Assembly (NCBI GenBank): GCA_001179505.1
Contig: CDMY01000646.1
Span: 124,001-188,000 of the forward strand
Direction of reading: 5' to 3'
Source of the DNA: Vitrella brassicaformis CCMP3155
Lineage: Eukaryota > Protista > Chromerida
Length of the DNA: 64,000 nt
Shown here in pieces: positions 1,310 through 36,480 of the stretch. The notes under the pieces were generated by a model. It was not told the origin of the DNA and did no database searches. It saw only the letters and a list, made by a program, of their open reading frames with translations. The position numbers and the translations under genes are program-made. Every line of letters starts with the position of its first letter. Position 1 is the first letter of the stretch.

Positions 1310-4300
1310 ATGAAGACCTCCACATCAGCGGGGAGGCGGCTTGACCGCATTCATCGACACTTCTCGTCCACCAGTGCTGCCAGGAGGAATGACAAATCAG
1401 CCACTCCCATGGGCTGGCTGTCCATCGGTGACGTATCGACGGCCATCTACAAGCCAGAGCGGCCCTCCCTGGTGCCACGTGGACACCACCTTTTCGGAGA
1501 GGGCTCACACGAGGTGCTGGATCACCACCGGTGGATGCTGCAGAAGGACCTCTCCCAACAGGACATGTGCCTCATCGGTCGGTCAGCTGCACAAAACGGA
1601 CGGGCGGAACAACACCCACACGTGGATGAGATGACCTGATGCATTACACTCCCTTATCCCCTGCGCTTGTCTGACTCACAGGCCCTCCTGGCTCATTCAG
1701 ACGGGAGCTGGTTTTGCGGTTCTGTGAGCTGACGCAGCGGGAGGTGGAGTACCTGTGCATCTCGCGCGACACGTCTGAGGGTGATCTCAAGCTGAGAAGG
1801 GAGCTGGGCGGCAACGCCACCTACTACGAGCAGCAGGCCCCGGTGCGTGCGGCCATCCATGGGCGAGTGCTGCTGATAGAGGGGCTGGAGAAGGCCGAGA
1901 GAAACGTCCTGCCGACGCTCAACAACCTGCTCGAGGTGGCTGACACACACACGGATGAAGCCCACGCACGCCCATCTTGGTCATTTCTGCTCTCTGCTCG
2001 TCTCATCAATCAGAACCGAGAGATGAACCTTGACGACGGCCGCCTTCTCATCAGCGCCGACCGCTATGACGCCCTCACCGACGACGCCTCACGAAACAGC
2101 AAGTCCCACCTGGTCCGTGTCGACCCCCGTTTCCGCGTCATTGCCCTCTGCATTCCCTGCCCACCATATGCTGGCCACCCCCTAGACCCGCCGCTGCGGT
2201 CTCGCTTCCAGTCACGCGTCGTCACCCCGCCCAGCCTCCTCACCCACGATGCGGCCCAAGACGACGGCAGCAGGGAGCTTTTGCAGCGCCTCCAGGGGTC
2301 GTTTGAGGCCCTGCGGCTGATAGAGAATCAATCTCAGTCGCTGGGCGGCATGGGACGGCTCCCGCACGTGTCGTTCGACTGCGGGAGGAGGGTGCTGGGT
2401 CTGGTGTGCCAGCTGCCGGAAGGGGCGCGGCCGAGTGTGTGGGGTGCGATGATGCGATCATGGCCGGCCAAGTGGATGGATCACAACACGGGGCGAGGCA
2501 AGAGGGAAACAGTGGCAGACGGAGAGGCGCAGCCGGCGGTTGAGGAGTCTACGCATGTGGCGACAAGTCGGCGCATCTTTAACCATTTCCAGCTCCCTTC
2601 TGATGCAGCTGCCGATGAAATGACCGCTCTGCCCGGTGCTGTTCGTGCCACACCTGCCGGCGACCATCTATGCCGCATCGACCGGCTGGCCAGCGTGCCG
2701 TGCGGACCATCGTTGGAGCGAGAGAGGGCGTTCGGCCAGGACGATCCGGCTTACGTGACGACAGACGGTGTCCGGAGGCTGCTCAATGGCGTGCTACAGG
2801 ACCATGCGAGCGGCTCAGACGTCTGTCTCATAGGCCCCCCCGGCTGTGGCAAGAGCGCCTTCGTCCGTCAGCTCGGCCGCTTCCTCGGCTACGACGGCAG
2901 CAGCACGGAGCATATCTTTCTTTACGAAGACATGAGCTCGCGCGACCTCCTGTTGCGCCGCATTACCGATGAGGAGGGCCAGACGCGTTGGCAAGAAGGG
3001 CCGCTGGTGAAAGCCGCGAAGGGAGGGAAGCTGCTGGTGCTGGATGGGCTGCAGAGGGTCCCTCCGGATGTGCTCTGCGTGGTCGGCCCTCTGCTGACGT
3101 CGCGGTTCCTTCCTCTGCGGCTGACCGAAGACGGCGAGACTCTTGTGCGCCACGATCGTGCGCAGCAGCACGGAGACGGCTCCATGGTGCCGATCCGCCC
3201 CTCGTTTCGCGTCATCGCTCTGGCCACGCCACCAACCGCCAAGACACGGTGGCTCACAGACGAGGTTGCAACTTACTTCTCTTTCCACGCCTTCCCAGTG
3301 GCCGATCGGTCCGACCTCTCACTCATCCTCTCATCGCGCTTCCCCTCCTGCCCATCGCCGGCGATTGACACACTCGTCAGCATCGCTGACAGACTTGAGA
3401 CATCTGGGCGTGCACAGCTCAACGAAGCCCACCCTCGGCTTTCACTGCGGCAGCTCATCCGCGTGACCAGGGGGCTCTGTGAGCGGAGGGGCAGGGAGGA
3501 CGGTGGTGGGTCGTTGCCTGTCCGTGCTGAGATGGACCGCCTCATCAGGAAGCAGACGCTGTACCCGTTCATGCCCCTGTCGGCCCGAATGCAGCTCGAT
3601 GAGGCTCTGGAGGTGACCAAGTCCCATGCGGGCATGGAGGAATGGGCCGCGGCAGTAGCCAGTGGTGCGAGGGAAGCCCCGTCTCCCCCCTCCCCTGCTT
3701 CGGCCGAGATGGTGCGTGTGGGGTCGATTGAGATGCCTGTGGGTCGGCCGATGAGGCCCGAGCTGGTGCCAAGGGTCACTTTCACCAGCATCGATCGCCA
3801 CCAGAGGGTGCTCGAGGATCTGGCGAGGGACTTCACAAGCGGGGAGAAGCACGTGCTCGTCATCGGTAAGCCAATATCTGCGCTCGGCATGGGGCCGTCC
3901 GTCCGTGTGAGTGTATGATGTGTCTGGTGCTTTGTTGACACACAGGTCCTCAGGGGGTGGGGAAGAACCGGATTGTGGATTATTTCTGCCAGCTGCTGCG
4001 TCTGGAGAGGGAGTACCTCCAGCTGCATCGCGACACCACAGTGCAGGCCCTCACTGTCTTGCCCGCTCTGAGGGACGGCCGCCTCGTATACGACGACTCG
4101 CCACTCGTCAAGTCAGCACCACCACCTCTCACACTCACATGCTGTTGATGCATTCATGTGTGTGCCCTCGTCTTTGTGTCAGAGCGGTGACTCATGGGCG
4201 TGTGTTGGTGGTGGACGAAGCCGACAAGGCGCCTCTGGAGGTGGTGGTGGTGCTCAAGAGCCTGGTGGAGGACGGCACCATGGCCTTGTCTGACGGCCGC

Positions 4301-9900: not shown

Positions 9901-10341
9901 AGTGCAGGCAGACAGACAGACGGGCAATCACAGAAACAAGCGCGACACAAACACGATGATGTACAGTATGTCCTTCCTTCTTGGATGCCGTTGGTGTGTC
10001 ATAGTGCTTTTGTTTTGTGTGTCCATACCCTCTGAAAGCCCAGCCGGCATGCAATTAAGTCCGCAGACAGACGTCTCACTCAGCCACTGCCACCGGGCAC
10101 AGGACTCATAGATCTCCTCTGAAAGCAAAGCGTTCGGTCCTTCTCGCCATCAGCACACGACAGAGCCCGACAGGTGAGAGGCGTGTGCTTTCTGGTGCTT
10201 GGAAGCTAAGCTCGCACCTGAGACCTCTTTGGCGAGAAGGAGCTCATCGACGTATCAGCGCGTTCGTCCCTGCTCCTTCGTCGATCCCCATCGCTCTCCC
10301 GTCCACTCCCGGCCGCGCATCTGTCCCTCTCGCCTGCCGCC

Positions 10342-11565
10342 ATGCCTGTGCTGCTGACGGCGTTCGCTGTCAGTGTGGGAGGGAAGCTCATAGCCCTCGC
10401 CACGAGCAAGGCCGCCATCGGCTTCGCGGCCTTCTATTTGGGCTGGCAGGGGAGCGGCATCGCCGACAAGGCCGTCGAGAAGGCGCTGGACACCTGGAAG
10501 CACCTCAATGGCGAGAGATCCGCCTCCCCCCCGGCCGACTCTCCCGCTCCCTCACCGCCTGGCCCACCACCTTCACCATCGGCCGCCGCCCCACCGACCC
10601 GGGACCCCCTCAGACGGCCGCCCAAGACGTTTGCCTCCGCGGAATGCCTCATTCCCCTTGACGGCAAAGATGGCGGCACTGAGGACGCCGCGTGCCACCA
10701 CAACGAGGCCGGCGTCATCGCCATCGCTGACGGAGTGTCGGACATCAAGCCGTGTTACGGCTTCTCGGCCCGTCTGCTCTCCAGATGGCTGATGAGCCGC
10801 ATTCGGGAGGTCGCCCCGCTGTACGCCATCAGTCGCTGGACTGAGAACCGCGCCGTCGACATCCTGCTGCATGTGTGGGGCGAGAGGGCCCTGGGGGAGG
10901 GCCAGCGAGGCGCCTGCACCGTGGTTGTGGTGGCCATGGTGCGGGATTCGTGGATCGACATCGACAACCTCCACGTGGCGGCCTGGGGCGACTCGGTGGC
11001 GCTGCTGCTGCGTCGGGACCGGTTCGGCAAGCTCTTCATCCTCTACAGGAGCGGGATCATGGTGGAGCCGAGCCTCCCGGACGTGCCGGTGCAGCTCAGC
11101 GCCCTCCCCCGGACAGTCGGCTGGACAACCACGACGAGAGTGAACCCCTCGCCGGCCGTTCTCCGCCGCAGCCTGCAGCAGCTCAAGTGGAGCGTCCAGG
11201 AGGGCGACCTGCTCCTGGCGATGACGGACGGCGTGAACGACAACCTGTTCCACGAGCAGATCGAGAGCGTTGCCAACCAGTACGAGCCGTACGCCGAGCC
11301 AGCCGTCATCGCACAGGCCATCTGCGAGGCCGCCCACAGCCACAGCGTCACACCCACCAGCGTCACCCCCTTTGGCACGCTCCGACATCGACATGGGGGG
11401 AAACCTGACGACATTTCAGTGGGGGCGGCCTGGGTGCGGCGAGCGGCAGGTGGCGATGACGCAGCATATGCGGCAGCACAACAAGAGTTGGTGCCCCGAT
11501 GGCTGTGGCCCCAGCCGCCGAGGGACAGAAGGAGGGAGAGGGGGGAGCGGGCGAGGGATAGATAG
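10342..11565 (+). CDS. PTC7: PTC7-like PP2C/PPM protein phosphatase, single exon, 407 aa
   Basis: PPM metal-binding motifs EDA, IADGVS, WGDS, AMTDGVNDNLF and GGKPDDISV in one uninterrupted ORF; hydrophobic N-terminus followed by a Pro-rich linker. Confidence 0.88.
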   Translation: MPVLLTAFAVSVGGKLIALATSKAAIGFAAFYLGWQGSGIADKAVEKALDTWKHLNGERSASPPADSPAPSPPGPPPSPSAAAPPTRDPLRRPPKTFASAECLIPLDGKDGGTEDAACHHNEAGVIAIADGVSDIKPCYGFSARLLSRWLMSRIREVAPLYAISRWTENRAVDILLHVWGERALGEGQRGACTVVVVAMVRDSWIDIDNLHVAAWGDSVALLLRRDRFGKLFILYRSGIMVEPSLPDVPVQLSALPRTVGWTTTTRVNPSPAVLRRSLQQLKWSVQEGDLLLAMTDGVNDNLFHEQIESVANQYEPYAEPAVIAQAICEAAHSHSVTPTSVTPFGTLRHRHGGKPDDISVGAAWVRRAAGGDDAAYAAAQQELVPRWLWPQPPRDRRRERGERARDR

Positions 11566-15729: not shown

Positions 15730-19881
<4,152 letters not shown>

Positions 19882-21404: not shown

Positions 21405-22228
21405 ATGGCACCTACGAGCGGAGATTTCGGGATGCCTGTGCTAGATCGGTCCCTAAGCAACGCGGGGACGCGCCTGTCGCTCAGCCAGGTGCGGTCGACA
21501 ATGTGTGTCTGAAGGGATTGATCTGATCTAATGTGTCAAATGCTTGTGTGTTTTGTGTTGTCTACAGGAGGCCCGGTGGTTTGTCGAGTCCTTGACTCAT
21601 GGCGCCGGCCTGGCCAACAAGGCCACTTTGCGGCTGGCCCTGCCCAAGCAGTACACCGACATAGATCGGGCCAGGGAGGCCTTGTCGGACCTTGTCGACA
21701 CCACTCAGGTCAGGTGGTCAGATAAGATGAAGACACGCAGGCAGGAAGAGTGTGTTGGTGTGTCGGTGTGCTGATTGCAGTGCTGCCAGTCTTCGTATGC
21801 GTGTGTGGGCGATGGCGGGGAGCGCGTGCGGCAGAAGCACTCGTGTGTGGTGCCTTTGGTGACGGCCGTCGACTGCTGTGGGTGGGAGCATGGGAAGATT
21901 GAGGAGGAGATCGGTCGGCTGGCGGGGAAGGCATTCGACCTGCAGGGAGAGGCGCCCATCCGAATGATCGTCGTGCATGTGAGGGCGTGAGTCGCTCGCT
22001 CGGCGTGGCGATGGACAAGTGAATGTGTGTGTGTGTGTGTGTGTATGTTAAGAGTGGAGCCGAGAGTGTCACAGACACCGTGGTGTTTGTCGGCCACCTG
22101 CTGTCGTTCGATACGCCGTCCTTCTACGCCGTGTGCGAGAAGGCCATCGCACTGCTCACACAACTGGAGGTGCGCTGCGTACGGACACTCCCCCTCCCCA
22201 CACACAGACGCACCTCTCTCTCTCTCTG

Positions 22229-22264
<36 letters not shown>

Positions 22265-25200
22265 GCGATGCAGTCGAGCGACCCTGAGTGGGGCCATCAG
22301 TATCCCTATTTCGATTTCCACTTCAACTTCGATGAGTACGTCAAAGCCGAGAGGGCCGCACTCGCCAACAGCGAGGCGCTCAAGGTTCGTTCGCACGGAG
22401 CGTGCACTCCCGCACACACACATGAAGTGTGTCATGTGTGTGTGTGTGTTCAGGAGCACTGGTCTAAGGTCGTGAGTGGCGTGCCGCCTTTGGAGCTGCC
22501 GATGGCCGTGGGGGCCAGCCGCCCGAAGGGCAAGCTGTTTGAGGGCAAGATGGCTACCATCGCCATTGACAGCGACACCGGTGAGCTCTCCACACCCCAC
22601 CACACAAATGAGAGTCACGGACGGCCATTCTTGTGTTGGTGTGTGTATGTCTGTGCAGTGCGTCAGCTGTGGGGCGTGGTGAGGCGTGCAGGGGTGACTG
22701 TTGAGTCCCTTGTGCTGGCGGCCTTTCAGGCAAGCCGTCACCATCAACACGCACACACACCGTCAGAGGGAATGTATGTGTGTGTATGTGTATGTGTGTG
22801 ACTTAACTGCACTGCAGGTGGCGATTCACCGTTACAGCCGAGAGGACGAGTTCCTGGTGGCCTACCACGCACACCCCACTGGGCCGCCCATCAACTACCC
22901 AAAGGCTGAAAAGGCCATCGGACCCGTAAGCGCCCACTCTCACACACAGATTTGCACCTCTGTGTGTGTCTGTGTGTCTCTATATGTCAGTTTCACGACA
23001 CCACTGTGCTGCGGCTGGGATACTCGCCCGACGCGACGCTCACGGAGGTGCACATGAGTGTGAGCATGTGGCAACGCATGACAGCCACACATTCCTCTGT
23101 TCCTCCTCTTGTGTACCTGTGGGTGGGTGCAGGTGGCGCAGTCGGTGCTGTCCAAGATCGCAGAGGCCCGCAACCACCAGCCATACCCTCTCGCACAAAT
23201 CGCAAGAGACATCAGTGCGTCGCCCTCACAGACACATACACACAGACACACACACACACACACACACAGCCCTCTGTGTGTGTGTGTATGTGCAGGCAAG
23301 CATGAGGGCAAAGGCAGCAGCAGCACGGGCCACTCGGCGGTGTGTCAGGCTGGCTTCGTGTACATGGCCTTCAACGGGGAGATGCCCCGCGTGGCCAACG
23401 CCCTCGCACACACACCCCAGATTAACGCACAAAGTGTCGACTTCGGTACGTGCGTGTCGGTGTGGCCATCCTCTGTCTGTCTGTCAAGACAGGCGTGTGT
23501 CTGTGTGGGTGTGGGTGTGGGTGTGTGTGTTGGTGTTGTCAGATTACACACTGGAGGCGTATGCGTTCTCCGATCCGCCCGGGAAGGCACCTGGTATCCT
23601 TCGCGCCCATCCATCCATCCATCCACACACACAGATGTGACTGTGTGTGCGTGTGGTGGCAACAGGGGTGTTGCAGCTCAACCTCAAGTACAATCCCCAC
23701 TGGCTGAATGCTGCCCGCGCACAGCAGCTTCTGCACAGCCTCGCCGCGTGCATCCGGGGCTCTGTCCGGAGCAATGACGCTGAGAAGGTCTCCACACACA
23801 CACATCTCCGTGTGTGTGTGCGTTCATCTGTGTGTGTGTGTGTGGCTTATGGCAAGTGCAGGTGGGGGATCTGGACATGGTTTCGGCGGATGAGAGGCGC
23901 CTCATGCTCGACACGTTCAACGACACAGGTCCGCGGACACTGAGCCCCCTAGACACACGCACACACACACGCTCACTCAGCCCACAATGGATGCGACGAA
24001 TGCAGCTGTGGATTACGACCTCTCCCGGCCGCTGCACCACTGGCTAGAGGAGCAGAGGAACAAAACACCAGGTGAGTGTGTGAGTGTGCCAACACGAGTA
24101 CACCTGCATCTGTGTGTGTGGGTGAATGGATGCATCAGATGCACCTGCGGTCGAGTTCGACGGCGCGGTGCTCACATACGAGCAGCTGCACACAAGGGCT
24201 GACAGATTGGCCAAGATCCTGCCGCCCGTACGCTCATCACATGGACATCCACATGTCTGTCAGAGAGTGTGTGTGTGTGTGGTGCAGAAGCGTTTGATCG
24301 GTGTGGCGATGGACCGCTCACACGAGATGGTGGTCGCCCTGGTGGCCGTGCTCAAGGTCAGTGTGTTCCGCGCCCAGACCACGCTCCCACGGATAGCAAC
24401 ATGTGGTGTGTGGTGTGTGAGGTGTGTGGTGTGTGTGGTGTGTGTGTGTGGTCAGGCGAACAGTGCCTACGTGCCGATTGACCCGTCTTATCCCAAGGAC
24501 AGAGTGGATTTCCTCCTGACCGACTGCAACGCGCCCGTACTGCTGACACAGACACACCTGCTCAGCACCATTGTCAAGTAAACCCTTACACACACACGCG
24601 CACAGAGAGAGAGAGAGAGACACACACACGCATGGCTGTGCTTCCGGACAGGGAGGGAGGCGAGAACGCCCCCAGGGTCATCTGTGTGGACAGTCTAGCT
24701 GAGACCCACACACCAGGCGACGGTGCAATGGCAATGTGTGAGTGTGCATCATCATCTTCCGACGACCCCGCTTACATGATCTACACGAGCGGCTCAACCG
24801 GCCGGCCCAAGGGCGCCATCAACTCACACAGGGGGATCGTCAACAGGCTGCTCTGGATGCAGGACGCCTATCGGCTGACGGAGCGCGACGCTGTGCTGCA
24901 GAAGACGCCCTTCAGCTTTGATGTCTCGGTGTGGGAGTTCTTCTGGCCACTGATGGTTGGCGCCAAGATCGTCGTTGCGAAGCCGGGTACGCTGCACACG
25001 CCTGCATGGTCGCTCGCCAGGTGTGTGTTGGGACCGTTCGTTCGTGTGTTATATATGTGTGCAGGCGGCCATCGCGAGCCCGACTACCTGGCGGACCTGA
25101 TAGTGTCTTCCGGCGTCACGACCTGCCACTTCGTGCCCAGCATGCTGTCCGTCTTCCTGGTACGTCTAGTCTACACAGAGAGAGAGAGAGAGATGTGATG

Positions 25201-26102
25201 TGAGAATGACCTGCCATGACCGGCTCTCTATGGGTGTTAGGACGAAGCCAAGGCGCCTGGGTGTTCGGCGTCGCTGAGGCGGGCTATCTGCTCGGGAGAG
25301 GTGCGCATTCACACACACACTTGACAGACAGACAGACAGACAGAGAGACAGAGAGACGTGCACATGTGTGAGTGTTGCAGGCGCTTCCCCTCGAGCTGCA
25401 GGACCGGTTCTTCCGAACCATGCACGACGTCGAACTGCACAACCTGTCAGCACACACACGAGCGTCGAGACGAAGACACACCTCTCTCTGTATCTCCCTT
25501 TCTCTCTGTGTGCACAGGTACGGCCCGACCGAGGCGGCCATTGACGTGACAGCGTGGCAGTGCTCGCCGGACAGCAAGTATGCCCCCACTCCCAAGGCTC
25601 CCACACCCACGCAGAGAGAAATGTTTGTGTGTGTGTGTGTGTGTGTGTCTGCAGGTTGCCGACGGTGCCAATCGGGAAGGCCATCGCCAACACAAAGCTG
25701 TACATCCTCGACTCGCGCCTGCAAATGGTCCCTGTGGGCGTAGCTGGGGAGCTGCACATCGGTACGTGTGCATTCCCCCCCCCCCCCCCCCCCCCCCNNN
25801 NNNNNNNNNNNNNNNNNNNNNNNNNNNNNNNNNNNNNNNNNNNNNNNNNNNNNNNNNNNNNNNNNNNNNNNNNNNNNNNNNNNNNNNNNNNNNNNNNNNN
25901 NNNNNNNNNNNNNNNNNNNNNNNNNNNNNNNNNNNNNNNNNNNNNNNNNNNNNNNNNNNNNNNNNNNNNNNNNNNNNNNNNNNNNNNNNNNNNNNNNNNN
26001 NNNNNNNNNNNNNNNNNNNNNNNNNNNNNNNNNNNNNNNNNNNNNNNNNNNNNNNNNNNNNNNNNNNNNNNNNNNNNNNNNNNNNNNNNNNNNNNNNTTC
26101 CC

Positions 26103-26133
<31 letters not shown>

Positions 26134-26494
26134 ACATCCATCAGCGCACATCTGTGTGCAGGTGGCGTGCAAGTGGCGATTGGGTACCATAGCCGGCCCG
26201 AACTGACGGCTCAGCGGTTCATCTCTGACCCTTACAGTGACAACGGCGGCCGGATGTACAAGACGGGGGACCTGGCGCGCTACTGGCCCGACGGCAGCAT
26301 CGAGTTCCTCGGCAGAATTGACTTTCAGGTATGGGTGGTGTGTGGTGTGTGGTGTGTGGGCGAGTAAATGGGTGGGTGGATGGATGGATGTGTGTGTGTC
26401 TCTGTGTGAGCAGGTGAAGATTCGGGGTCTTCGGATAGAGCTGGGAGAGATCGAGGAGGCCATTGCGTGAGTCAAGGACACACGTGCACACAGC

Positions 26495-26528
<34 letters not shown>

Positions 26529-29235
26529 CAGGGGCAAACATGAAGACTCACACGTGTGTTGGGTGGTCTGGGTCAGCTCCCATCCCTTGGTGAAGGAGGC
26601 AGTCGTCCTGGCCAGGAACGGCGCTCTCGTGGCCTACTTGACGCCAACACACCCCACCACCCAAGTAGAGGTCAGTCACGTGCACACGCAGCGCCACCAT
26701 GCCGCGATCAAGACACACACTGTTGTGTGGATGGACGTGCAGCCCTCGAGCCTCCGGTCGCATCTGAAGGAGACTCTGCCCGAGTACATGGTGCCCTCGG
26801 CCTTCGTGCAGCTGCACAGGTGGATTGAGCGCATTGCACACACACACACACACACATGGATGTCTGTCTATCTGTCTGTCTGCCTGTGTGTCCATGTGTG
26901 TGTGCAGTTTGCCTCAGACGCCCAACGGGAAGCTGGACAGGAAGGCACTCCCTGCACCATCTGACGAGAACCTGGGCAGGAACCAAAGTGAGTGTTCTTC
27001 CCTCTGCACCCAACCCCGGACAAGAGAGAGAGAGATGGATTGTATCCGTGTCTCTTGTTGGTGCAGGTGAGTACGTTGCCCCGTCCACAGGCGTGGAGAA
27101 GGCCATCACATCCATCTGGCAGTCGCTGCTCGGGTGCGTGTGTGTACGTGTCTGCACACAGAAATGACGCCACTCATCCGGATGTGTCCGTCTGTCTGTG
27201 TGTCTGTGTGTCTGTGTGTCTGTGTGTCTGTGTGTCTGTGTGTCTGTGTGTGCGCAGCATCGAGAAGGTCTCCGTGGACGCTGATTGGTTCGAAAATGGC
27301 GGCAACAGCCTGCTGGTACACACACACACATACACACAGACATCCACAGCGCACAGCACCTTCACATACGACGCTCTCTCTCTCTCTCTGTGCGTGTGTG
27401 TCACAGGCGATGCGTTTGGTGAGCTGTGTGGAGAAGGAGTGCGGCGCCAAGCTGGGCCTGGCACAGCTGCTCAAGGCCTCCACCGTCCGCGGCCTGGCCG
27501 CACTTGTCGAGGAGAAAAGAAACAACGCCGAGAAGGTGCGTGTGCAGCCGAGAGAGAAGCTCACAAAGCCCCGTGTCCACTCATCCATGTGTGTGGTCGG
27601 TCGGTCTGTCTGTGGTTGTCTGTGGCTGACAGCAATCGCGCTGGCACAAGTGTGTTATCGAGATCACGCCAAAGTGAGTACAATACGCACGGGCAGGAGA
27701 ACCCCCAGGCCCTTAATCTGGCCCGTCTTGCTGTTTCTTTCTTTCCGCAGGCAGCCCGGCAGCACCAGGCGGCCTCTCTTCCTCGTCCACCCAGCTGGTA
27801 CTCTCACACACACGCCCATACTAACCTCGCAGGTATGTTGATGTCCTGTCCTACGCTGTCTCTGTCCCCACACAGGTGGCCACGTCTTGTGCTACGCCCC
27901 GATCGGCCGCCACATGGGCCCCGACTTCCCTCTCTATGGCGTGCAGGCCACTGGTACGCCACGGCACGGCACGCCGCGCCACGCGCACAAGCGTCCAATG
28001 GATGTGCACATGCACGTGTCCTGCAGGGTTTGCCGCTGGCGAGGAGCCCAATCAGACAGTCGAGGCGATGGCCAGGCTGTACGCCGACGCCATCAGTACG
28101 TTCGTGTGCCTGCACCTGCGCACCGATGCATTCATCACTCTCTCTCTCTCTCTCTCTCTGTGTCTGTGTGTGTGTGTGTGTGTGTGTGCAGCGACTGTTG
28201 AGCCCTCCGGCCCCTACCGGGTGGGCGGCTGGTCGTTTGGAGGCGTTGTTGCGTATGCGACCTGCCTGGAGCTGATGCGCAGGGGACACACAGTGGAGAT
28301 CTGCGGTATGAAGAGCGCACCCCCCCCCCCCCCNNNNNNNNNNNNNNNNNNNNNNNNNNNNNNNNNNNNNNNNNNNNNNNNNNNNNNNNNNNNNNNNNNN
28401 NNNNNNNNNNNNNNNNNNNNNNNNNNNNNNNNNNNNNNNNNNNNNNNNNNNNNNNNNNNNNNNNNNNNNNNNNNNNNNNNNNNNNNNNNNNNNNNNNNNN
28501 NNNNNNNNNNNNNNNNNNNNNNNNNNNNNNNNNNNNNNNNNNNNNNNNNNNNNNNNNNNNNNNNNNNNNNNNNNNNNNNNNNNNNNNNNNNNNNNNNNNN
28601 NNNNNNNNNNNNNNNNNNNNNNNNNNNNNNNNNGGCCCCCACACACACGGACCCATGTGTCCATGTCCCATGGGTGCAGCGGTTCTCGACTCGTGGCGCC
28701 CCATCATCCTCGACAAGGCAAAGGTGGATACTCACCATCTTGACACACACACACACCAAACCCGTCCAAATATCAGCGGTGTGTGTGTGTGCAGGAGATC
28801 ACCGATCAGTATCTGGTCGGCGTCTGCTCCCGAGTCTTCGGCGGCATGTTCGGACAGGTATGCCACACACGCATTTGGACGCATTTTGCACAGCCACACG
28901 TGTGTCTACGGTCACACACTCAGGACAATTTGGTGACTGACGAGGAGCTGGCATCGGTTGAGGGCGGCCACGGCGCCCAGATCGACTATATCATTGACAA
29001 AGCCAGACAGGTAGGCAAACACACACACAGACGCGTGTGTGAGGAGAACACACAATTGGACACACGTCTGTGTGTGTGTGTGTGTGTGTTGTGGAATAGG
29101 TGGGCATTTTCCCGGCGGACGTCGAGCAGAGCGAGAACAGGCGGATCCTGGAGGTGCTTGTGGGCACCCTCCGCGCCACCTACTCCTACAAGCCACCGAG
29201 ATTCCCAGGAACCGTCACATGCTTCAGAGCGTACG

Positions 29236-29266
<31 letters not shown>

Positions 29267-29547
29267 ACACACAGAGAGAGAGAAAGCGAGAGTGACAGAC
29301 GCATAAACGAACAGATGGATGGATGGACTGTGTGTGTGGACGTGTAACTAACAGGATGGAGAAGCACCTGCACGCGCCCGACCCTCAGCTGGTGTGGGTG
29401 GAGCTGTTCGCCATCATGGACGCCGACAAGGTGGACGTGCGGCAGTGTGCGGGGTCTCACTACACCTTCATCGTAGAGCCGCACGTCAAGGCCCTGGCAC
29501 ACAACATACGCGACGCTCTACTGGAGCTGGAGGGCGGGCAGAAGTAG
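21405..29547 (+). CDS. Monomodular non-ribosomal peptide synthetase C-A-T-TE, about 40 exons, predicted Ser-activating
   Basis: C1 motif LSLSQ|EARWF. A-domain cores [30 protein letters not shown]|YGPTE, GELHI|[22 protein letters not shown]|[21 protein letters not shown] and TPNGKLDRK. Carrier FENGGNSLL (Ser 27307-27309). TE GWSFG (Ser 28233-28235) and GSHYT (His 29458-29460). The junctions checked join in frame. Confidence 0.96.
25798..26097. other. Assembly gap (300 N) inside an NRPS intron
   Basis: Flanked by poly-C. The exons on either side join in frame (GELHI|GGVQ). Confidence 0.97.
28334..28633. other. Assembly gap (300 N) inside an NRPS intron
   Basis: Preceded by poly-C. The flanking exons join in frame (VEIC|AVLDSW). 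Confidence 0.97.
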
Positions 29548-30775
29548 TCTGTGTGTAGCGGCGTTGATGTCTTGGCACATGTGCGCGTGTGGATGGATGG
29601 ATGGCTGAGTGCGTGTGTGAGTGGTGTGTGTGTCACGCGAAGCGTGGGTCGGGTCGGTTCATTATTCGTGTGTAGGGGGGTAAATGCGTGCGTGGGCGTG
29701 TGCGTGTGCGTGTGCGTGTGCCTGCTCTTCAAGACTCCCACAACTATGGGCGGGCTTTTTTGGTTTTCTTGTCTGTGTGGGCGTGCATTGCGTGTGAGTG
29801 CAGAGCACATCACATGCTACGTGTGGCGGTTTTTGATGCCCCTGTTGGGCAGGCAGCACAGCGGTCGGTCCAGTCCAATGCGTGTTTGTGTGCGTGTGTG
29901 TGTTTAGTGTGGGTGGCTGGCTGGTGCGTGCCTGTGTGTATGTGCGTGTGTTACCCGTGGAGGTGTGTGTGTGGGGGTGTGTGGCTGTCTTTTTCCCATC
30001 GGACGTGTGTTGACGTGTGTGTGTACTCACTCAGCCGATGTGCGCTGAGACCGACAGACAGACAGTTTGGTAAGCGGATGCGGTTGGGTGTTGGGTTGGG
30101 TGGGTGGGTGGGGAGGGTGTATGCGGACGTGATTGCGAGAGACTGTTGATATCTATGCCCTATATGTCGGGTGAATGGACAAACCACGCCAGCCTTACTG
30201 TTAACACTCACTCAGGAATGGTCCCTCTCTACGCGCAAATTAATAAATGGACATGTGAGTGCACCATGCAGTGAGTCGACTCACGCCCCTGAATACACAT
30301 GGACTCACGCCTCCCTCCCCTCGGCTATCCACCCATCCATTGGGGGGAGAAGACATTGACTCACAGCGCAACGGCAGGCAGAGTCGGTCTGTCTCTCATG
30401 AAATGACCTGCGTCAATCGACCAACCCTCCCTCAATCACGCGACAAACATGCCAGCACCATCCTCACCGCCCGCCGGGCCGGCGTATCTACCATCGGCGC
30501 CGCCCACCACGCACACACACACTCGCACTACGAACCCACCGCATCACCTGGCTTTACGACTTGTCTGCCCACGCAGCCTTGGTGCGCACCACACACCATT
30601 GGCCGAAAAAAACCATTGGGCAGGCGGCTGCCCAATGCGGCTGAAGGCTGAAAAAATCGTTGGCCTCTCTGCCCCACACACCATCCACCGTCACGCATAA
30701 AGGGGTGAGTGGATGGACTTGTCTGTCCTCGCACACACGCCGGTGGTAGGCTTTCTTGGCCTCGGCATCCACCCG

Positions 30776-32558
30776 TCAGATCTTCCTGATGACGAACACA
30801 TGCGACTTGATGCCCAGGGGGCCCGGCCGGTTGCCGTACGACCGCACCAACTCCCCCCTCAGTGTCACGTAGAACTGCTTGACCCCGGCCGCAACGGCAT
30901 CAGCTGCATCAGCGGGATTGTGACCTTCGAGGCCGCCCGACGCTGCCGCTCTTTTGCAGTCGTCAGCCATGAAGGAGGTGACCATGCCCTCCGCCCAGCC
31001 GCGGGCCGACAACATGAGCTGCACACATTCAAACAGCTCACACACGCCATCCATCAGGTCTGTGTGTCAGTGTCTGTTTGCTCACGTCGTCGAAGAACAT
31101 CTCGGTGGCTTTACCCTCGTCGCACTGGCCGGAGGCGACCCTCGTGTTGTAGGCATGCAGGAAGACCTCGTTGTCTGCCGTCCAGATGGCCTCCAGCTGC
31201 AGCGGCAGCTCCGTGTGTGTGGCGGGACAGGGCAGTGGGCACTCGTCGTGGGCCGGCCGTCGACGCCCTCCCACGGCTGCAGCAGTGTGGACATGGGGAG
31301 GAAGACAAAAGGCAGGGACGCCTTGCTCGCCGTCTCGCGAGACACCCTGACACAGCAACAGCATTCACTGTGTGCGTGTGTGTGATATGGGGGTCTACCA
31401 GCCCTCATCAGCCATGACGTTCACGACGTTGTGGACGGCCTTGAACACGCCGCCCCCTTCCTTTGTTTCCACCCATGACACGACGATGCGGCCGCCCGGG
31501 ACGAGCTCGGCACTGCGGAGGCGCAGAAACGTCTCCAACTCCCGCTGCTTGACCTAACAATACCACACCAGACACCACCACAGACAGAGAGATTTGACAG
31601 ACGGACACCGTGTGTGTGTGATGGGGACACACACGTACCTGCAGCCACGCTTGTGTGGCCTCTTTGTCTGTGGAACACTGGAAGACCAGCCCATCGGACA
31701 GGGGCCTCGGCTGATGGTCCATCCTACACGGGCGTCACAACCGGAACAGACGTGGATGGACGAGTGGGCAGGTGCCCTCAGATGATACATGTGGGGGTCA
31801 TGTACTGCAGTGGCACACATAAGTACATACCAGTGGATCGAGTTGAAGGCGACCACCAAGTGAAGACTCTCGTCGGGCGCCTGACGCTCGTACTACACAC
31901 AACACACACACACAGTCGATGAATGCCGCCCGTGTTGCTTGCCCCTCCCCGTTCCTCACCATTGTCTTCCCGGACGCAAAGGCCATGGCTGTCGGCGGGC
32001 CCCCAGCGGCGTAGCCCGCCGGCGCATTGACCGTGTTGAAGAGCTCTGCCCAGTGGTTGGATGGCAGGTCGTTGTGGATGACACACAGACACCGATGGCC
32101 GCCGATTTCATGTCGGTGCTCTTGCATGGCCTTGTGCACGGCCGCCATCATTCCATCGGACGCCTTGCCGTGACCACACCTGCACGTCAAAGCAATCCAT
32201 CAACACACGAAAGCGAAAGACGAGTCGATGTGACGTCAGCCGCTCACACATGTGTGCTGTGCCAATACATACCCGCAGTCGAGGGCCCACACGGGGCCAA
32301 GGTTGTTGCCTCTCTGCCGCTCTCCCTTGAGCGTCTTGATCAGCCCCTCGGACACCACCGAATGCCACAGACGCGCCGCAGCCTGCAGCCCACAGCACAG
32401 CAAATCACAGAATCAGTGAGTGAATGCAACAGGGGATACCGGCAAGTGTGTCGGTCTGTCTGTGTGTGTGTGTGGGCACGCACCTGCTGCCAGTGGCTGC
32501 CGTCCTTATTGTACGACTTGCCCATCACGGGCGTCACGACACCCGCCATCCTTGCCAT
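30776..32558 (-). CDS. SABATH-family (Methyltransf_7) SAM-dependent carboxyl methyltransferase
   Basis: MGKSYNKDGSHWQQ, WALDCG|CGHG (SAM motif I), IHNDLPSNHWAELF, ESLHLVVAFNSIHW, FLRLRSAELVPGGRIVV, SLPFVF and LSARGWAEGMV, in the order expected for SABATH. Stop at 30776. Confidence 0.85.
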
Positions 32559-32884
32559 GGATCTTTCTCTCTCTTTGTGTGGGTGTCAGTCACCTGCCGG
32601 CCTCTGCTGTCGTATTTGTTGCTCTGGGCTTGACCGCTGCGAGCCAAGCGCGCAGATGCCGATCGGAATTCCGGACGCGATGCTCCTCCGTCAAGCGTCC
32701 TCAACGAGGCCTCACGACCCATGGGAGAGGCTCTTCTGACCAAGATCAAGATCTCTCGGCAAGCGACTGATTCATTGCTCTCCTACTGCCGCTTCCTTAA
32801 GAGTCCCGGTCCTCTGCGAAGCTCATTCCTTCGAGTGTCAGCGTGGACAAGATTGTCAACTGTGGAGGGCTGAGTTAACTGCCA

Positions 32885-33480
32885 ATGTGGAGGCCCCTTC
32901 CTATTCTGGGATGGCGTGACGTGTTCGACGTCGCCGGTTGCCCATCGTCTTGCCCTGCGTGGAAGGGGCCTGCTTATCCCAAGAAGCCATCTCCCAGGTG
33001 TAACAACCGCGGGGGCGACCACGTCCTGGTGCACTACAAGGGCCACGCAGAGGTGTGCCGCTTTCCACTACGGGCCAGTGTGGAGGACACGATGGTCGTC
33101 GTACGGGAGAAGTTCGGGCCGCATGGGCTGGAGTCGTGCGGTTTGTCAGTCCCTATGGGCAGGTTGTGGATCCTTTGCACTTGTTTTCTTATGAAAGTGT
33201 GGCACTCTGGCTCGGTCAGTGCTCTTCGGGACAGACAGACAGGCAGACAGACGTCGACAGTCAAGAGCCTTCTCTCTTCCCCGCGTGTGCGTGTGTGTGT
33301 GCAGGTCCGCTGTGGACGCCTGAGCAGGAGGAGGTGTGGAGGAGAGAGAACGCCCCCTCGTGGGTCAAGTGGCTGCGCCGCAACCTCAGGGGGCAGAAGG
33401 TCGAGCAACGGGCACCCACAGAGGACCACCAGCCACTCCTGGCCCACCACGGCGACCTGGTCGTACAAGGACAGCCCTGA
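32885..33480 (+). CDS. Hypothetical two-exon protein (~143 aa), divergent from the methyltransferase
   Basis: Exon 32885-33140 and exon 33305-33480 join in phase 1 across a GT-AG intron (LESC|GPLWTPEQ). Confidence 0.5.
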
Positions 33481-33782
33481 CTGACAAACACGCACATGGC
33501 TGCCTGCCTGCCACCCGCTTGGCCACACAAATGCAGCCAGGTGCTGCACTGCACAAATGCTCACACACAGCTGTGTGTCCTTTCCTTGACGATCTTTCTT
33601 TCTTTATTTTGCCGGTGGATGTATGCGTGTAGCTGTGATTGTGCTGTGTGGCTGCCTGCCCGCCTGGCCACAATGCAGCCAGCCAGGTGGATACTCTCTC
33701 TACACGAGGCCGAGCTGCCCACCCCCCTTTATGCCATTCATTCATCGGCCGACCGACCACTGGGCTTCACACTTGTGTGCCT

Positions 33783-34090
33783 ATGATGAGCCTGAGGGCG
33801 GGCGGCGACGCGGCTGTCGCAGTCAGGCCGTTCGTTGCTGGGCTGTTAAGGAGACGCCCGGGTAAGAAGGGAAGATGAGACAGGCAGGCAAACACCTGAC
33901 GCGCTTGTGTGTGAGTGTGTGTGCGTGCACAGCTTCTTTTGCTGATGATTTCGCCTCAGGTTTTTCTGACCCGATACCGCCTCGCCATTCCCGACCGACA
34001 CCATGCGGCTGTCTGTCATCCGGCCCCGCCGGCCGCCCGCAGGGTGGCAAGGGAAGCCGGGTCGGGGCGACGGACGCAGCCAGGAGATGA
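33783..34090 (+). CDS. Possible small two-exon protein (~78 aa)
   Basis: Donor GTAAG at 33862 and acceptor at 33932 are phase-compatible; no homology recognised. Confidence 0.3.
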
Positions 34091-34387
34091 CAGACGGCTG
34101 AAAGTGATGAGAGAGGGGCAGACTGATAGAACAGAGATATCTATTGATTGTTAGCACATATGTGCGATATGCGATCGAAATGCGGTAGAGCATGGAGAAA
34201 TTCTCTCTGGATGGGTGGAATGCGTCCAGGCGTGTGCACGGACGTGTGTCCACGCATGAACATCCACACCGACTCAGCAACCCTTAAACCAGTGAAGTGA
34301 TGAACCTGGCCGGCGACCACGGTTCATTGCGGGCCGCCGTCTCCCCCGACGCCCCCAGGCCGTTCGCCCCTCCCTACGGCTGCAAGG

Positions 34388-34844
34388 ATGATGATTCCCC
34401 TCGGCATGCAGCGCCTTATCGCATTCTCCCTCTTCGTTGCTTGGGCGGCACCCGGGCTGTCAGCGAATCCCTCCGACCCTCTCCGCCATCGCCGCAACAA
34501 TTTGAATGCCATCGCCCGACACGGACACATGGCCAGAGCCATTGACAGGAACAACGGCGCACAGCAGGGTACACGTGTGGCAGAAAGAGAGACCGACGTT
34601 GTCTGTGCCATTGGGTGTCTCATGTGCGCAGTCTGCAGGTGAAAAGTGTCAACTCGCATCTTGGGGGATTCTCTACGACTGCAAGACCCCCAAAGTGTGT
34701 GCCCTGCGCGTGCCTCAGCAGACGGGCGAGTGCGTGTCTGCCGATGAGGCACAGCAGCAGTGCGGCCCGGAGGAAGTCAAGAGCGCACCGGCCTCAGACG
34801 GCCGATACTGCATTGTGAGGTCACCCATGGGGGAAAAGGCTTGA
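34388..34844 (+). CDS. Small secreted cysteine-rich prepropeptide (~128 aa, 2 exons)
   Basis: Signal-like RLIAFSLFVAWAAPGLSA, then an RHRR motif. Intron 34569-34638 (phase 1). Exon 2 contains six Cys. Confidence 0.65.
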
Positions 34845-35346: not shown

Positions 35347-36041
35347 TCACACCCGCCCAGGCCTCCCGCAGCGGGCACGGGCAGCGTCTGCTGCTGCACT
35401 GGTGCGGCTGCTGCCTGCCGTGGGGTGCGAGCGGCTGGTGGTGCTGCCGCTGCTCTTGCTGCTGGTGGTCCTGGTGCGGGGCGGCTTGGTGTCCGTCGGC
35501 TTGGTGTGGGCAGGGCTTGGGTGGTTGTCGAAGTTGCCCGCCTTGGCGGCATTGGGGGCGGGGAGGGTGGGCTCGTCGACCTCTGAGAAGTAGATGGTGT
35601 CGGACATGGTGTTGAACTCCCACTCCGCCGCCTCCCTGGACGACTCGCGTATCAACGCCTGCACACATCAAACAGACTCGGTTTCATTATCACGGAAGAT
35701 GCATGTGCCCTCGGCATCCCTCCCAGCTTACCTCCCGTTTGGCCTGGCAGAGGTAACACAGCTGCCCTCCACTCCTTGCGGCAGGCAAACGGATTGCCAT
35801 CACACGGGCTGTCCTCGGCACGCGCCGGGCCCTCCTCCGCTATCTCCAGCATCAGGGCCTTCGCCTCGTTGAGGTCCTTCATGCGCTCGTCGCTGCCCTT
35901 GGTCTTGTCGGAGTGGTACTTGAGAGCGAGGAGGCGATAACGCTTTATCACGGACCCACTCGTCGCCCCCCTCCTCAGGCCGAGAATGCGGTGGGCCTTG
36001 CTAAGCTGCTGGAGCTTCTCAAACCAGCACTCAACTGCCAT
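35347..36041 (-). CDS. J-domain (DnaJ-like) protein with HSD in place of HPD; 5' end uncertain
   Basis: HRILGLRRGATSGSVIKRYRLLALKYHSDKTKGSDERMKDLNEAKALM is a compact J-domain; a downstream exon encodes a low-complexity tail. Confidence 0.75.
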
Positions 36042-36480
36042 CTTAACAAAGCTGAACCTCACAAGCCCCTTGGGCTGCACAGACACAGACACACACGGGA
36101 TCCCCCTGCCCTTGTTTTCCCCTTGTATCTTTCTCATTTCTTGTGCAAGCCACATGGTGCACCTCTCGTCATGGCCAATCTGGTGCATGAGTGTGTAGTT
36201 GCCGTTAGCCAGCCGGTCCCTGCCGCAACAACGCAGGCAAGAAGGATGTCTTTGGATGTTTGCTGCTGCTGCTCACCCAGGGCGGGCAGGATGGAAGCCG
36301 CCCATTCTGTACATATGTGCTGATGTCCTCCATGTCTCCACCCGCAGCAGCATTGTACGCACCCTGCCAAAGTGATATCGAAGACTCCAAGTCAAGGAGG
36401 CGTAACTCCACTCTTTATGGACCGCACTTATTGAGTGCGTCTCGCTTACTGTTCAAGTGGAGCGATGCGTTTTGCATTAA

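Follow-up and report, generated by a model that had tools for sequence, protein, structure and literature searches.

A probable nuclear, intron-rich MysE homologue beside a frame-broken SABATH-type methyltransferase gene in Vitrella brassicaformis

Introduction

Vitrella brassicaformis is a photosynthetic relative of the apicomplexan parasites. A stretch of 64,000 nucleotides from its genome (strain CCMP3155, contig CDMY01000646.1; the whole stretch is termed ‘the window’ below) carries two convergent genes for small-molecule enzymes: a nonribosomal peptide synthetase (NRPS) on the forward strand and, on the reverse strand, a methyltransferase of the SABATH (PF03492) type. An earlier reading of the same DNA (the ‘original prediction’) proposed that the two might form a biosynthetic pathway, in which the methyltransferase would esterify an (acyl-)serine acid released by the thioesterase of the synthetase. 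The analysis described here favours a different interpretation: the NRPS is probably a nuclear, intron-rich homologue of MysE, the NRPS-like cyanobacterial enzyme that completes the UV sunscreen shinorine by adding serine to mycosporine-glycine; the reading frame of the neighbouring methyltransferase is broken, and no tie between the two genes other than adjacency was found.

The NRPS is already present in the literature, in a survey of algal gene clusters that lists it as VitBra_CDMY01000646.1_1 (an 8,116-base region with the layout Cond-AMP-PCP-TE) and that matched it, by this layout, to the pyreudione NRPS of Pseudomonas (PMC10794256). According to a 2023 review, MysE homologues seem to be confined to cyanobacteria (PMC10666671), and no publication that connects Vitrella or Chromera with a MysE gene was found in a search of the literature.

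Structure of the two genes

The two genes run toward each other, with stops that face across 1,228 bases (at 29547 for the NRPS and 30776 for the methyltransferase; Table 1), in agreement with the original prediction of a spacing of about 1.2 kb. The splice-aware model of the NRPS joins 42 exons into a single frame of 4,089 bases and 1,362 codons, extending over two assembly gaps. Pfam searches with single exons returned the AMP-binding, PP-binding and Thioesterase families, and tblastn with a Coleofasciculus protein (P0172) matched 27 of the 42 exons; the exons of the condensation (C) domain gave no match in Pfam or PDB searches. Contigs assembled from two RNA-like sequencing runs (X1 and X2; assembled contigs, not reads) were aligned to positions 28650-34600, where an X1 contig matches the NRPS exon at 29100-29230 and another X1 contig spans the last NRPS exon and continues to at least 30078, probably as a 3' untranslated region (UTR).

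A search of 1.84 billion representatives with methyltransferase exon 3 returned a close 123-residue fragment (P0001) on a metagenome contig from the ENA (L001; ERZ893784, k147_5619912), as well as one true remote homologue (P0004); two further hits, P0002 and P0003, were rejected as chance matches to repeat proteins. Positions 1-3998 of L001 follow the window colinearly between 32408 and 28173 (in descending order); about 85% of the DNA is identical, and gene order and splice sites are the same, which indicates that the contig derives from a close relative of V. brassicaformis (an apparently unsequenced one, present in that metagenome).

Neither assembly gap has removed coding sequence from the NRPS, because both lie within introns and because the frame and the residue numbering of P0172 continue across them. 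The first is flanked by exon ends reading GELHI and GGVQVAIGY, which when joined yield the usual core motif of an adenylation (A) domain; residues 789-821 of P0172 align before it and 821-891 after it, with none missing. Across the second gap, P0172 runs from residue 1183 to 1187, and L001 bridges the interval (its position 3836 corresponds to window 28640 and its position 3842 to window 28328), leaving about 5 bases between the flanks; judged from this alignment, the true length of the gap is probably a few bases. Both blocks of 300 Ns are edged by runs of C or G beside CA repeats (25780-25797, 26098-26115, 28320-28333 and 28634-28645), and have the appearance of artefacts of scaffolding in intron sequence of low complexity.

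Table 1. Features of the locus, in window coordinates
Feature	Position	Strand	Remarks
Probable MysE-type NRPS gene	21405-29547	+	ATG 21405, TAG 29545-29547; 42 exons, 1,362 codons; C*-A(Ser)-T-TE
Degenerate condensation-like domain (C*)	21405-23928	+	14 exons
Adenylation domain, predicted L-serine	24006-26987	+	Pfam AMP-binding; specificity code
Thiolation (carrier) domain	27067-27535	+	Pfam PP-binding; GGNSL attachment site
MysE-type thioesterase domain	27751-29547	+	Pfam Thioesterase; GWSFGG, LDS, SHY
Assembly gap 1	25798-26097		inside intron 25762-26161
Assembly gap 2	28334-28633		inside intron 28306-28679
Inter-stop space	29548-30775		no tRNA or Rfam match; RNA-derived contig covers 29417-30078
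SABATH/PF03492-type methyltransferase gene	30776-32558	-	ATG 32558, TGA 30778-30776 (TCA on the + strand)
Methyltransferase exons 1-4	32558-32484, 32382-32273, 32179-31960, 31892-31831	-	read by hand
Methyltransferase exons 5-8	31723-31639, 31553-31399, 31346-31086, 31018-30776	-	read by hand
Frame break, exon 7, Pro/Thr/Ser-rich loop	31209-31264	-	one-base frame difference; comparison with L001
‘143-aa ORF’ of the original prediction	30954-31385	+	antisense of methyltransferase exons 7-8 (31346-31086, 31018-30776); not a gene

Assignment of the NRPS to the MysE family

A scan of metagenome contigs with the largest A-domain exon of the NRPS yielded 80 loci. The best of these (L097) encodes a 913-residue protein with an adenylation-thiolation-thioesterase (A-T-TE) layout, 50% identical over residues 441-1355, which is that of Fischerella sp. 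NIES-4106 (P0125). In L097 the NRPS-like gene is directly preceded by a DHQS-like gene, a gene for a Methyltransf_3 O-methyltransferase and an ATP-grasp gene, an arrangement that corresponds to the mysA-mysB-mysC order, followed by an NRPS-like mysE, of a cluster for mycosporine-like amino acids. The same cluster context surrounds P0165 (from Gloeothece PCC 7424), P0172 and P0156, the last an 888-residue protein from Trichormus (formerly Anabaena) variabilis ATCC 29413. The MysE of this strain (Ava_3855) has been characterized biochemically (PMC10666671), and P0156 is taken to be that enzyme because strain, A-T-TE layout and cluster context agree.

Full-length comparison by blastp aligns residues 24-1354 of the Vitrella model with cyanobacterial MysE homologues of the C-A-T-TE layout, at 41-45% identity and more than 1000 bits, with P0165 and P0172 as the best full-length matches. 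The thioesterase (TE) domain gives a clean separation. It is 46-62% identical (248-302 bits) to about 100 TE domains of the family, with 57-62% to those of the cyanobacterial MysE homologues and 57% to P0156, as against 23-32% and at most 131 bits to the full-length TE domains of other NRPSs, with no values falling between 131 and 216 bits. In a TE tree, the Vitrella domain lies within a clade of 97 MysE family rows (support in the SH-aLRT, a likelihood-ratio test, of 99), beside the Coleofasciculus proteins (support of 81). For the A domain, identity is 51-55% to a large number of domains of the serine type. The layout also agrees with what has been described for MysE, namely an A-T-TE core with an optional N-terminal C domain (PMC10666671, PMC12232313): the Vitrella protein has that core in one polypeptide, preceded by a C domain. 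The original prediction of a single C-A(Ser)-T-TE module was correct; the (acyl-)serine product that it proposed is probably not, given an NRPS of the MysE type whose relatives sit in mysA-mysB-mysC clusters.

The sequence motifs of the A-T-TE core agree with those of the family. The ten-residue specificity code of the A domain, DVWHISLIDK, is identical in P0156, P0165, P0172, P0171, P0130, P0141 and P0175 and is shared with most members of the MysE family; the best solved relatives of this domain are FscH, Txo1, Txo2, an unnamed peptide synthetase (8xjz) and EntF. The GGNSL site of the carrier domain is the same as in the A-T-TE MysE proteins, and the Ser/Asp/His triad motifs of the TE domain (GWSFGG, LDS and SHY) are intact. 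Moreover, the TE exons differ from those of L001 by only 3 amino-acid changes in 209 codons, and the corresponding ratio of nonsynonymous to synonymous change (dN/dS) of 0.06 indicates that the gene is under strong constraint.

The C domain is a different matter. It is only 21-23% identical (E 1e-19) to the C domains of MysE homologues, and its C3 motif reads H-L-L-S-F-D-T-P-S in place of the typical H-H-x-x-x-D-G-x-S. Thirteen alignments with C domains of bacteria, none of them gapped, show the H-L-L-S-F-D-T string, and the catalytic HHxxxDG of EntF-type enzymes is absent. Within the cyanobacterial C-A-T-TE family (52 members aligned), the second His is missing in 43 of the 45 members listed, so that its absence from the Vitrella protein is a trait of the family and not a local defect. 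Among the cyanobacterial domains themselves (P0130-P0201), H-[Q/K/Y/C/T]-x-x-x-D nearly always replaces H-H-x-x-x-D, and both His residues occur in only two of the 45 listed; the extra C domain of the MysE family seems, on the strength of these motifs, to be non-catalytic in general.

If the chemistry of MysE (PMC10666671) is used as a model, the Vitrella enzyme would act as follows. By analogy with the Anabaena enzyme, its A domain would activate L-serine, which would then be loaded on the phosphopantetheine arm of the thiolation (T) domain; the TE domain would join the serine to C1 of mycosporine-glycine and release shinorine. The C-like domain, having lost its catalytic His, would be dispensable for this chemistry.

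A transcribed methyltransferase gene with a broken frame

Recognition of the methyltransferase at the family level required the spliced product. The Pfam Methyltransf_7 model matches exon 6 alone (E 5e-5) at 22.9 bits, under its cut-off of 29.8, whereas a local hidden Markov model (HMM) of 359 positions, built from 114 proteins that carry PF03492, matches the spliced protein at 103 bits (E 1e-33) over HMM positions 49-259. Positions 260-359 are unmatched. The protein is 27-33% identical to any PF03492 member found and keeps 32 of the 70 strongly conserved positions of the family (1 of 8 in the C-terminal part); its best solved relatives, both weak, are the mycobacterial fatty acid O-methyltransferase 5F2K (exon 3, E 0.5) and plant SAMT. 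The motifs SYNKDGSHWQQ and SIHW can be located by eye, the former (at the N-terminus) outside the HMM alignment. The Gln of the N-terminal motif and the Trp of the HW motif presumably bind the carboxylate of the substrate, a role that we assume from the SAMT structure. The gene is, as far as its sequence can tell, a divergent SABATH/PF03492 carboxyl-methyltransferase-like gene, and the family named in the original prediction thus stands.

The gene is transcribed and spliced, as indicated by an X1 contig that joins 31018 to 31086 and omits the 67-base GT..AG intron between them, which the DNA runs retain. Other RNA contigs end at or near the borders of exon 5 and fit the junction of exons 2 and 3. 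Since these data are assembled contigs, they give no expression levels and do not rule out minor isoforms; both the NRPS and the methyltransferase are present in the contigs of X1 and X2, which cannot be used to compare conditions.

The coding sequence shifts by one base within exon 7: its upstream part, which has the family homology, lies in one frame, and its downstream part lies in another together with exon 8, where a C-terminus resembling that of the family is followed by a stop that L001 shares. L001 is 7 bases longer across 31264-31209 and reads through with its frame intact. The sequence at the break is matched without insertions or deletions by contigs of three runs, which come from at least two studies: the RNA-like X1 and X2, whose contigs retain the segment, and X5, represented by DNA. 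As a result, the conserved C-terminal third of the protein is probably not made, and a full-length fold with the C-terminal substrate-cap region in one open frame is not found in Vitrella. Comparison with L001 gives a dN/dS of 0.18 for exons 2 to the upstream part of exon 7 and of 0.87 for the downstream part of exon 7 and exon 8, where all three frames are near 1 (a rough Fisher test of the difference gives p 0.04). Frame-restoring introns in exon 7 were also considered and rejected, the best candidates reaching no more than 4.8, compared with 7.8-13.5 for the introns that the gene does use. The simplest reading is that the gene is transcribed, but that constraint on its C-terminal third has been lost and this part is not made correctly any more in this species, and we infer a loss of methyltransferase function. 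An open reading frame (ORF) of 143 residues, suggested as a further cluster member by the original prediction, proved to be the antisense of exons 7 and 8.

Relationship between the two genes

A PF03492 gene was found in none of the 80 loci of NRPS relatives (1.18 Mb) and in none of 4 verified sunscreen loci, with a positive control that succeeded in 82 of 82 cases; reciprocally, NRPS C, T or TE domains were found in none of 82 loci of methyltransferase relatives (contexts that were drawn from three Pfam-annotated contigs and 80 genome loci). Among the loci sampled, the two genes occur together only in L001, and in none of the 166 prokaryotic loci. Synteny, which had been proposed as a check, is thus kept in the environmental relative and absent from the 84 and 82 prokaryotic loci, and the adjacency in L001 itself says little because that contig is only about 15% diverged in its DNA. 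The genes are convergent and so share no promoter. The NRPS is cyanobacterial in type, Acidobacteria, Proteobacteria and Verrucomicrobia supplied the nearest relatives found for the methyltransferase, and nothing suggests that the two were transferred jointly. Given the absence of the pair from the loci of both sets of relatives, together with the shifted frame and relaxed C-terminal third of the methyltransferase, the proposed two-enzyme pathway is unsupported. Nothing beyond adjacency ties the NRPS to the methyltransferase, which is the basis that the original prediction itself had acknowledged for the link.

The surroundings do not extend the pair into a wider cluster, as none of the neighbours is biosynthetic: they include a PP2C-like phosphatase (10222-11556, forward strand, in one long exon), a MYST (MOZ/SAS) histone acetyltransferase (16000-19000, forward strand) and a DnaJ-domain protein (35353-36224, reverse strand). 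The window as a whole is GC-rich eukaryotic DNA, with short introns rich in CA/TG repeats.

The relatives of the methyltransferase do have an association of their own. Generic AMP-binding ligases (about 25% identical) occur in 11 of their loci, three of them directly adjacent. In several genomes of soil bacteria, a PF03492 methyltransferase stands immediately beside an AMP-binding, acyl-CoA-ligase-like gene, as at L052:11114-12562, L066:4902-6320 and L012:11191-11697. These neighbours hint at a pair that handles carboxylic acids.

The space between the two stops, where tRNAs, Rfam families and segments with coding potential were all looked for and none was found, probably consists of two 3' UTRs, and the earlier statement that no recognizable gene lies there holds. 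It contains two curiosities. A 72-base block (30308-30379) is 96% identical in L001, as against 70-90% for nearby non-coding DNA, and has no Rfam or tRNA match. Further along, a 24-base near-perfect palindrome (CATTGGGCAGCCGCCTGCCCAATG, at 30614-30637) is also conserved in L001; the interval that contains it (30441-30639) shows 5-20 times the surrounding depth in all four runs, and probably represents a hairpin element or a dispersed repeat within the methyltransferase 3' UTR.

Alternative interpretations

Several observations weigh against a frame-broken methyltransferase beside a shinorine-forming MysE, a reading that we nonetheless regard as probable. A tree of the A and T region, which is poorly resolved, places the NRPS outside the MysE clade, on a long branch; that tree was set aside as a test of family because it tracks amino-acid specificity and is not diagnostic, and the TE tree and domain-wise identities were therefore relied upon. 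The exon borders of the C domain are uncertain, being the least secure part of the gene model. No mysA, mysB or mysC gene is present in the 64-kb window, and to our knowledge no chemistry has been described for V. brassicaformis, such that substrate (L-serine) and product (shinorine) are assigned by analogy. Finally, a weak 56-base intron (31264-31209) could bypass the frame break, and RNA contigs drop minor isoforms. The most obvious rival for the NRPS, an EntF-like maker of a serine-based siderophore or an acyl-serine, would account for the C-A(Ser)-T-TE layout, for the place of EntF among the solved structures closest to the A domain, and for the published pairing of the layout with the pyreudione NRPS (PMC10794256). 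However, the similarity of the A domains reflects serine specificity and is not diagnostic, the C domain has no catalytic His, the TE domain is of the MysE type (and only 23-32% identical to others), and no aryl-carrier or acyl-loading partner is found near the NRPS in the 64-kb window, all of which leaves this alternative highly improbable.

Two further alternatives concern the methyltransferase. It might be intact, through the weak short intron at 31264-31209 or some other bypass, and have some unrelated small acid as its substrate, a fatty acid for example. The segment in question resembles an intron in that it is less conserved than the exons and is 7 bases shorter than its counterpart in L001; the same gene holds an intron of only 52 bases; the best solved relative of exon 3 (5F2K) methylates fatty acids, albeit at an E value of 0.5; and several bacterial members of the family adjoin AMP-binding ligases. 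But the donor (GTCGAC) and acceptor (GAG) that such an intron requires score -0.7, against the 7.8-13.5 of real introns, the RNA contigs of X1 and X2 keep the segment even though the neighbouring intron has been removed, and the protein retains no more than 1 of the 8 positions conserved in the C-terminal part, so an intact enzyme seems unlikely. The other alternative revives the two-step pathway in a more specific form. If the NRPS is a MysE, the acid released by its TE domain would be shinorine, and a SABATH-type enzyme could methylate a carboxyl of that product to give shinorine methyl ester, which occurs naturally in dinoflagellates (PMC3083659), alveolates like Vitrella. The ester is said to arise by esterification of one carboxyl of shinorine, through an enzyme that the review in question does not name (PMC3083659), and the 2023 review lists no carboxyl-methylating tailoring enzyme; a carboxyl methyltransferase beside a shinorine-forming enzyme in an alveolate therefore makes a concrete hypothesis. 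In its favour, L001 keeps the two genes side by side with an unbroken methyltransferase frame, purifying selection acts on the N-terminal two thirds of the methyltransferase (the dN/dS of 0.18), and each of the two putative RNA assemblies contains both genes. Against it stand the frame break in this species (seen in three runs), the nearly neutral C-terminal third, the scant divergence of L001 (about 15%), which gives the kept adjacency little weight, the absence of the pair from all 166 prokaryotic loci, the lack of a common promoter between convergent genes, and the exon-3 search, which among its 1.84 billion representatives found no close homologue other than the L001 fragment and hence none in dinoflagellates. 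For the lineage, the hypothesis of a methyl ester is accordingly quite unlikely, and for this strain it is less likely again because of the frame break. The fuller version of the idea, in which the SABATH-type gene (intact in L001) is the carboxyl methyltransferase that esterifies shinorine and the pair is the remnant of a two-gene tailoring unit in an alveolate sunscreen pathway, is to be given a slightly smaller chance than the hypothesis for the lineage.

Other carriers of MysE and implications

The reading preferred here, of a probable MysE beside a decaying neighbour, replaces a filing by layout with a predicted role for the NRPS, as the last step of shinorine synthesis. The Vitrella NRPS adds a eukaryotic member with introns to a known family, and is not a new kind of system. 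An intron-rich and strongly constrained nuclear MysE in an alveolate, together with a fungal entry described below, would mean that the NRPS route to shinorine also exists in eukaryotic genomes. In Symbiodinium, the serine-adding step is represented by a gene for a D-Ala-D-Ala ligase (MysD-type). The locus also provides a caution concerning inferences from adjacency, as the methyltransferase beside the NRPS is in decay and the pairing is not repeated elsewhere.

In a protein search with the TE region of P0172, almost all of the matches listed were cyanobacterial, and the public Vitrella protein was not among the 120 listed. The exception is a protein of 1178 residues from the fungus Basidiobolus ranarum (P0250), which is 42.6% identical to the Vitrella model and carries a MysE-type TE domain (68% identical to that of the Coleofasciculus protein P0172 and 56% to that of Vitrella); it is either a second non-cyanobacterial carrier of MysE or else contamination. 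Three members of the MysE TE family (P0246, P0252 and P0265, of about 1,750 residues) contain an embedded class-I S-adenosylmethionine (SAM) methyltransferase domain (PF13847/PF08241/PF08242), an indication that methylation is built into some MysE-like enzymes, by a different class of methyltransferase.

Comparison with known systems

In bacterial and fungal biosynthetic gene clusters, as in Vitrella, enzymes acting on small molecules are found side by side. Unlike such clusters, the Vitrella locus consists of two convergent genes with housekeeping genes on either side, in a pairing that does not recur in the other genomes sampled. The methyltransferase, when compared with SABATH/PF03492 enzymes (plant SAMT, 1M6E; the Mycobacterium marinum enzyme, 5F2K; and those of soil bacteria), shares with them motifs of the core fold, namely an LDxGCG-type SAM loop, HNDLPSN, SIHW and FLRLRSAELVPGGR, but its C-terminal third is unrecognizable and out of frame.

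The NRPS has the same one-module C-A(Ser)-T-TE layout as EntF, and the serine code of EntF closely resembles its own. EntF, however, possesses an active condensation domain (HHxxxDG) and an oligomerizing TE domain, whereas in the Vitrella protein the corresponding His is replaced by Leu and the TE domain is of the MysE type. In comparison with the cyanobacterial MysE enzymes, the Vitrella gene differs in being nuclear and split by 41 spliceosomal introns, in standing apart from mysA, mysB and mysC, and in having a far more diverged C domain (the identity of 21-23% given above). With the Gloeothece and Coleofasciculus enzymes it nevertheless shares the extra C domain that lacks the second His, and a similar length (1,362 residues, versus 1,320-1,360); with the MysE of Anabaena, it shares the A-T-TE core, an identical serine code, and the same catalytic motifs in the carrier and TE domains.

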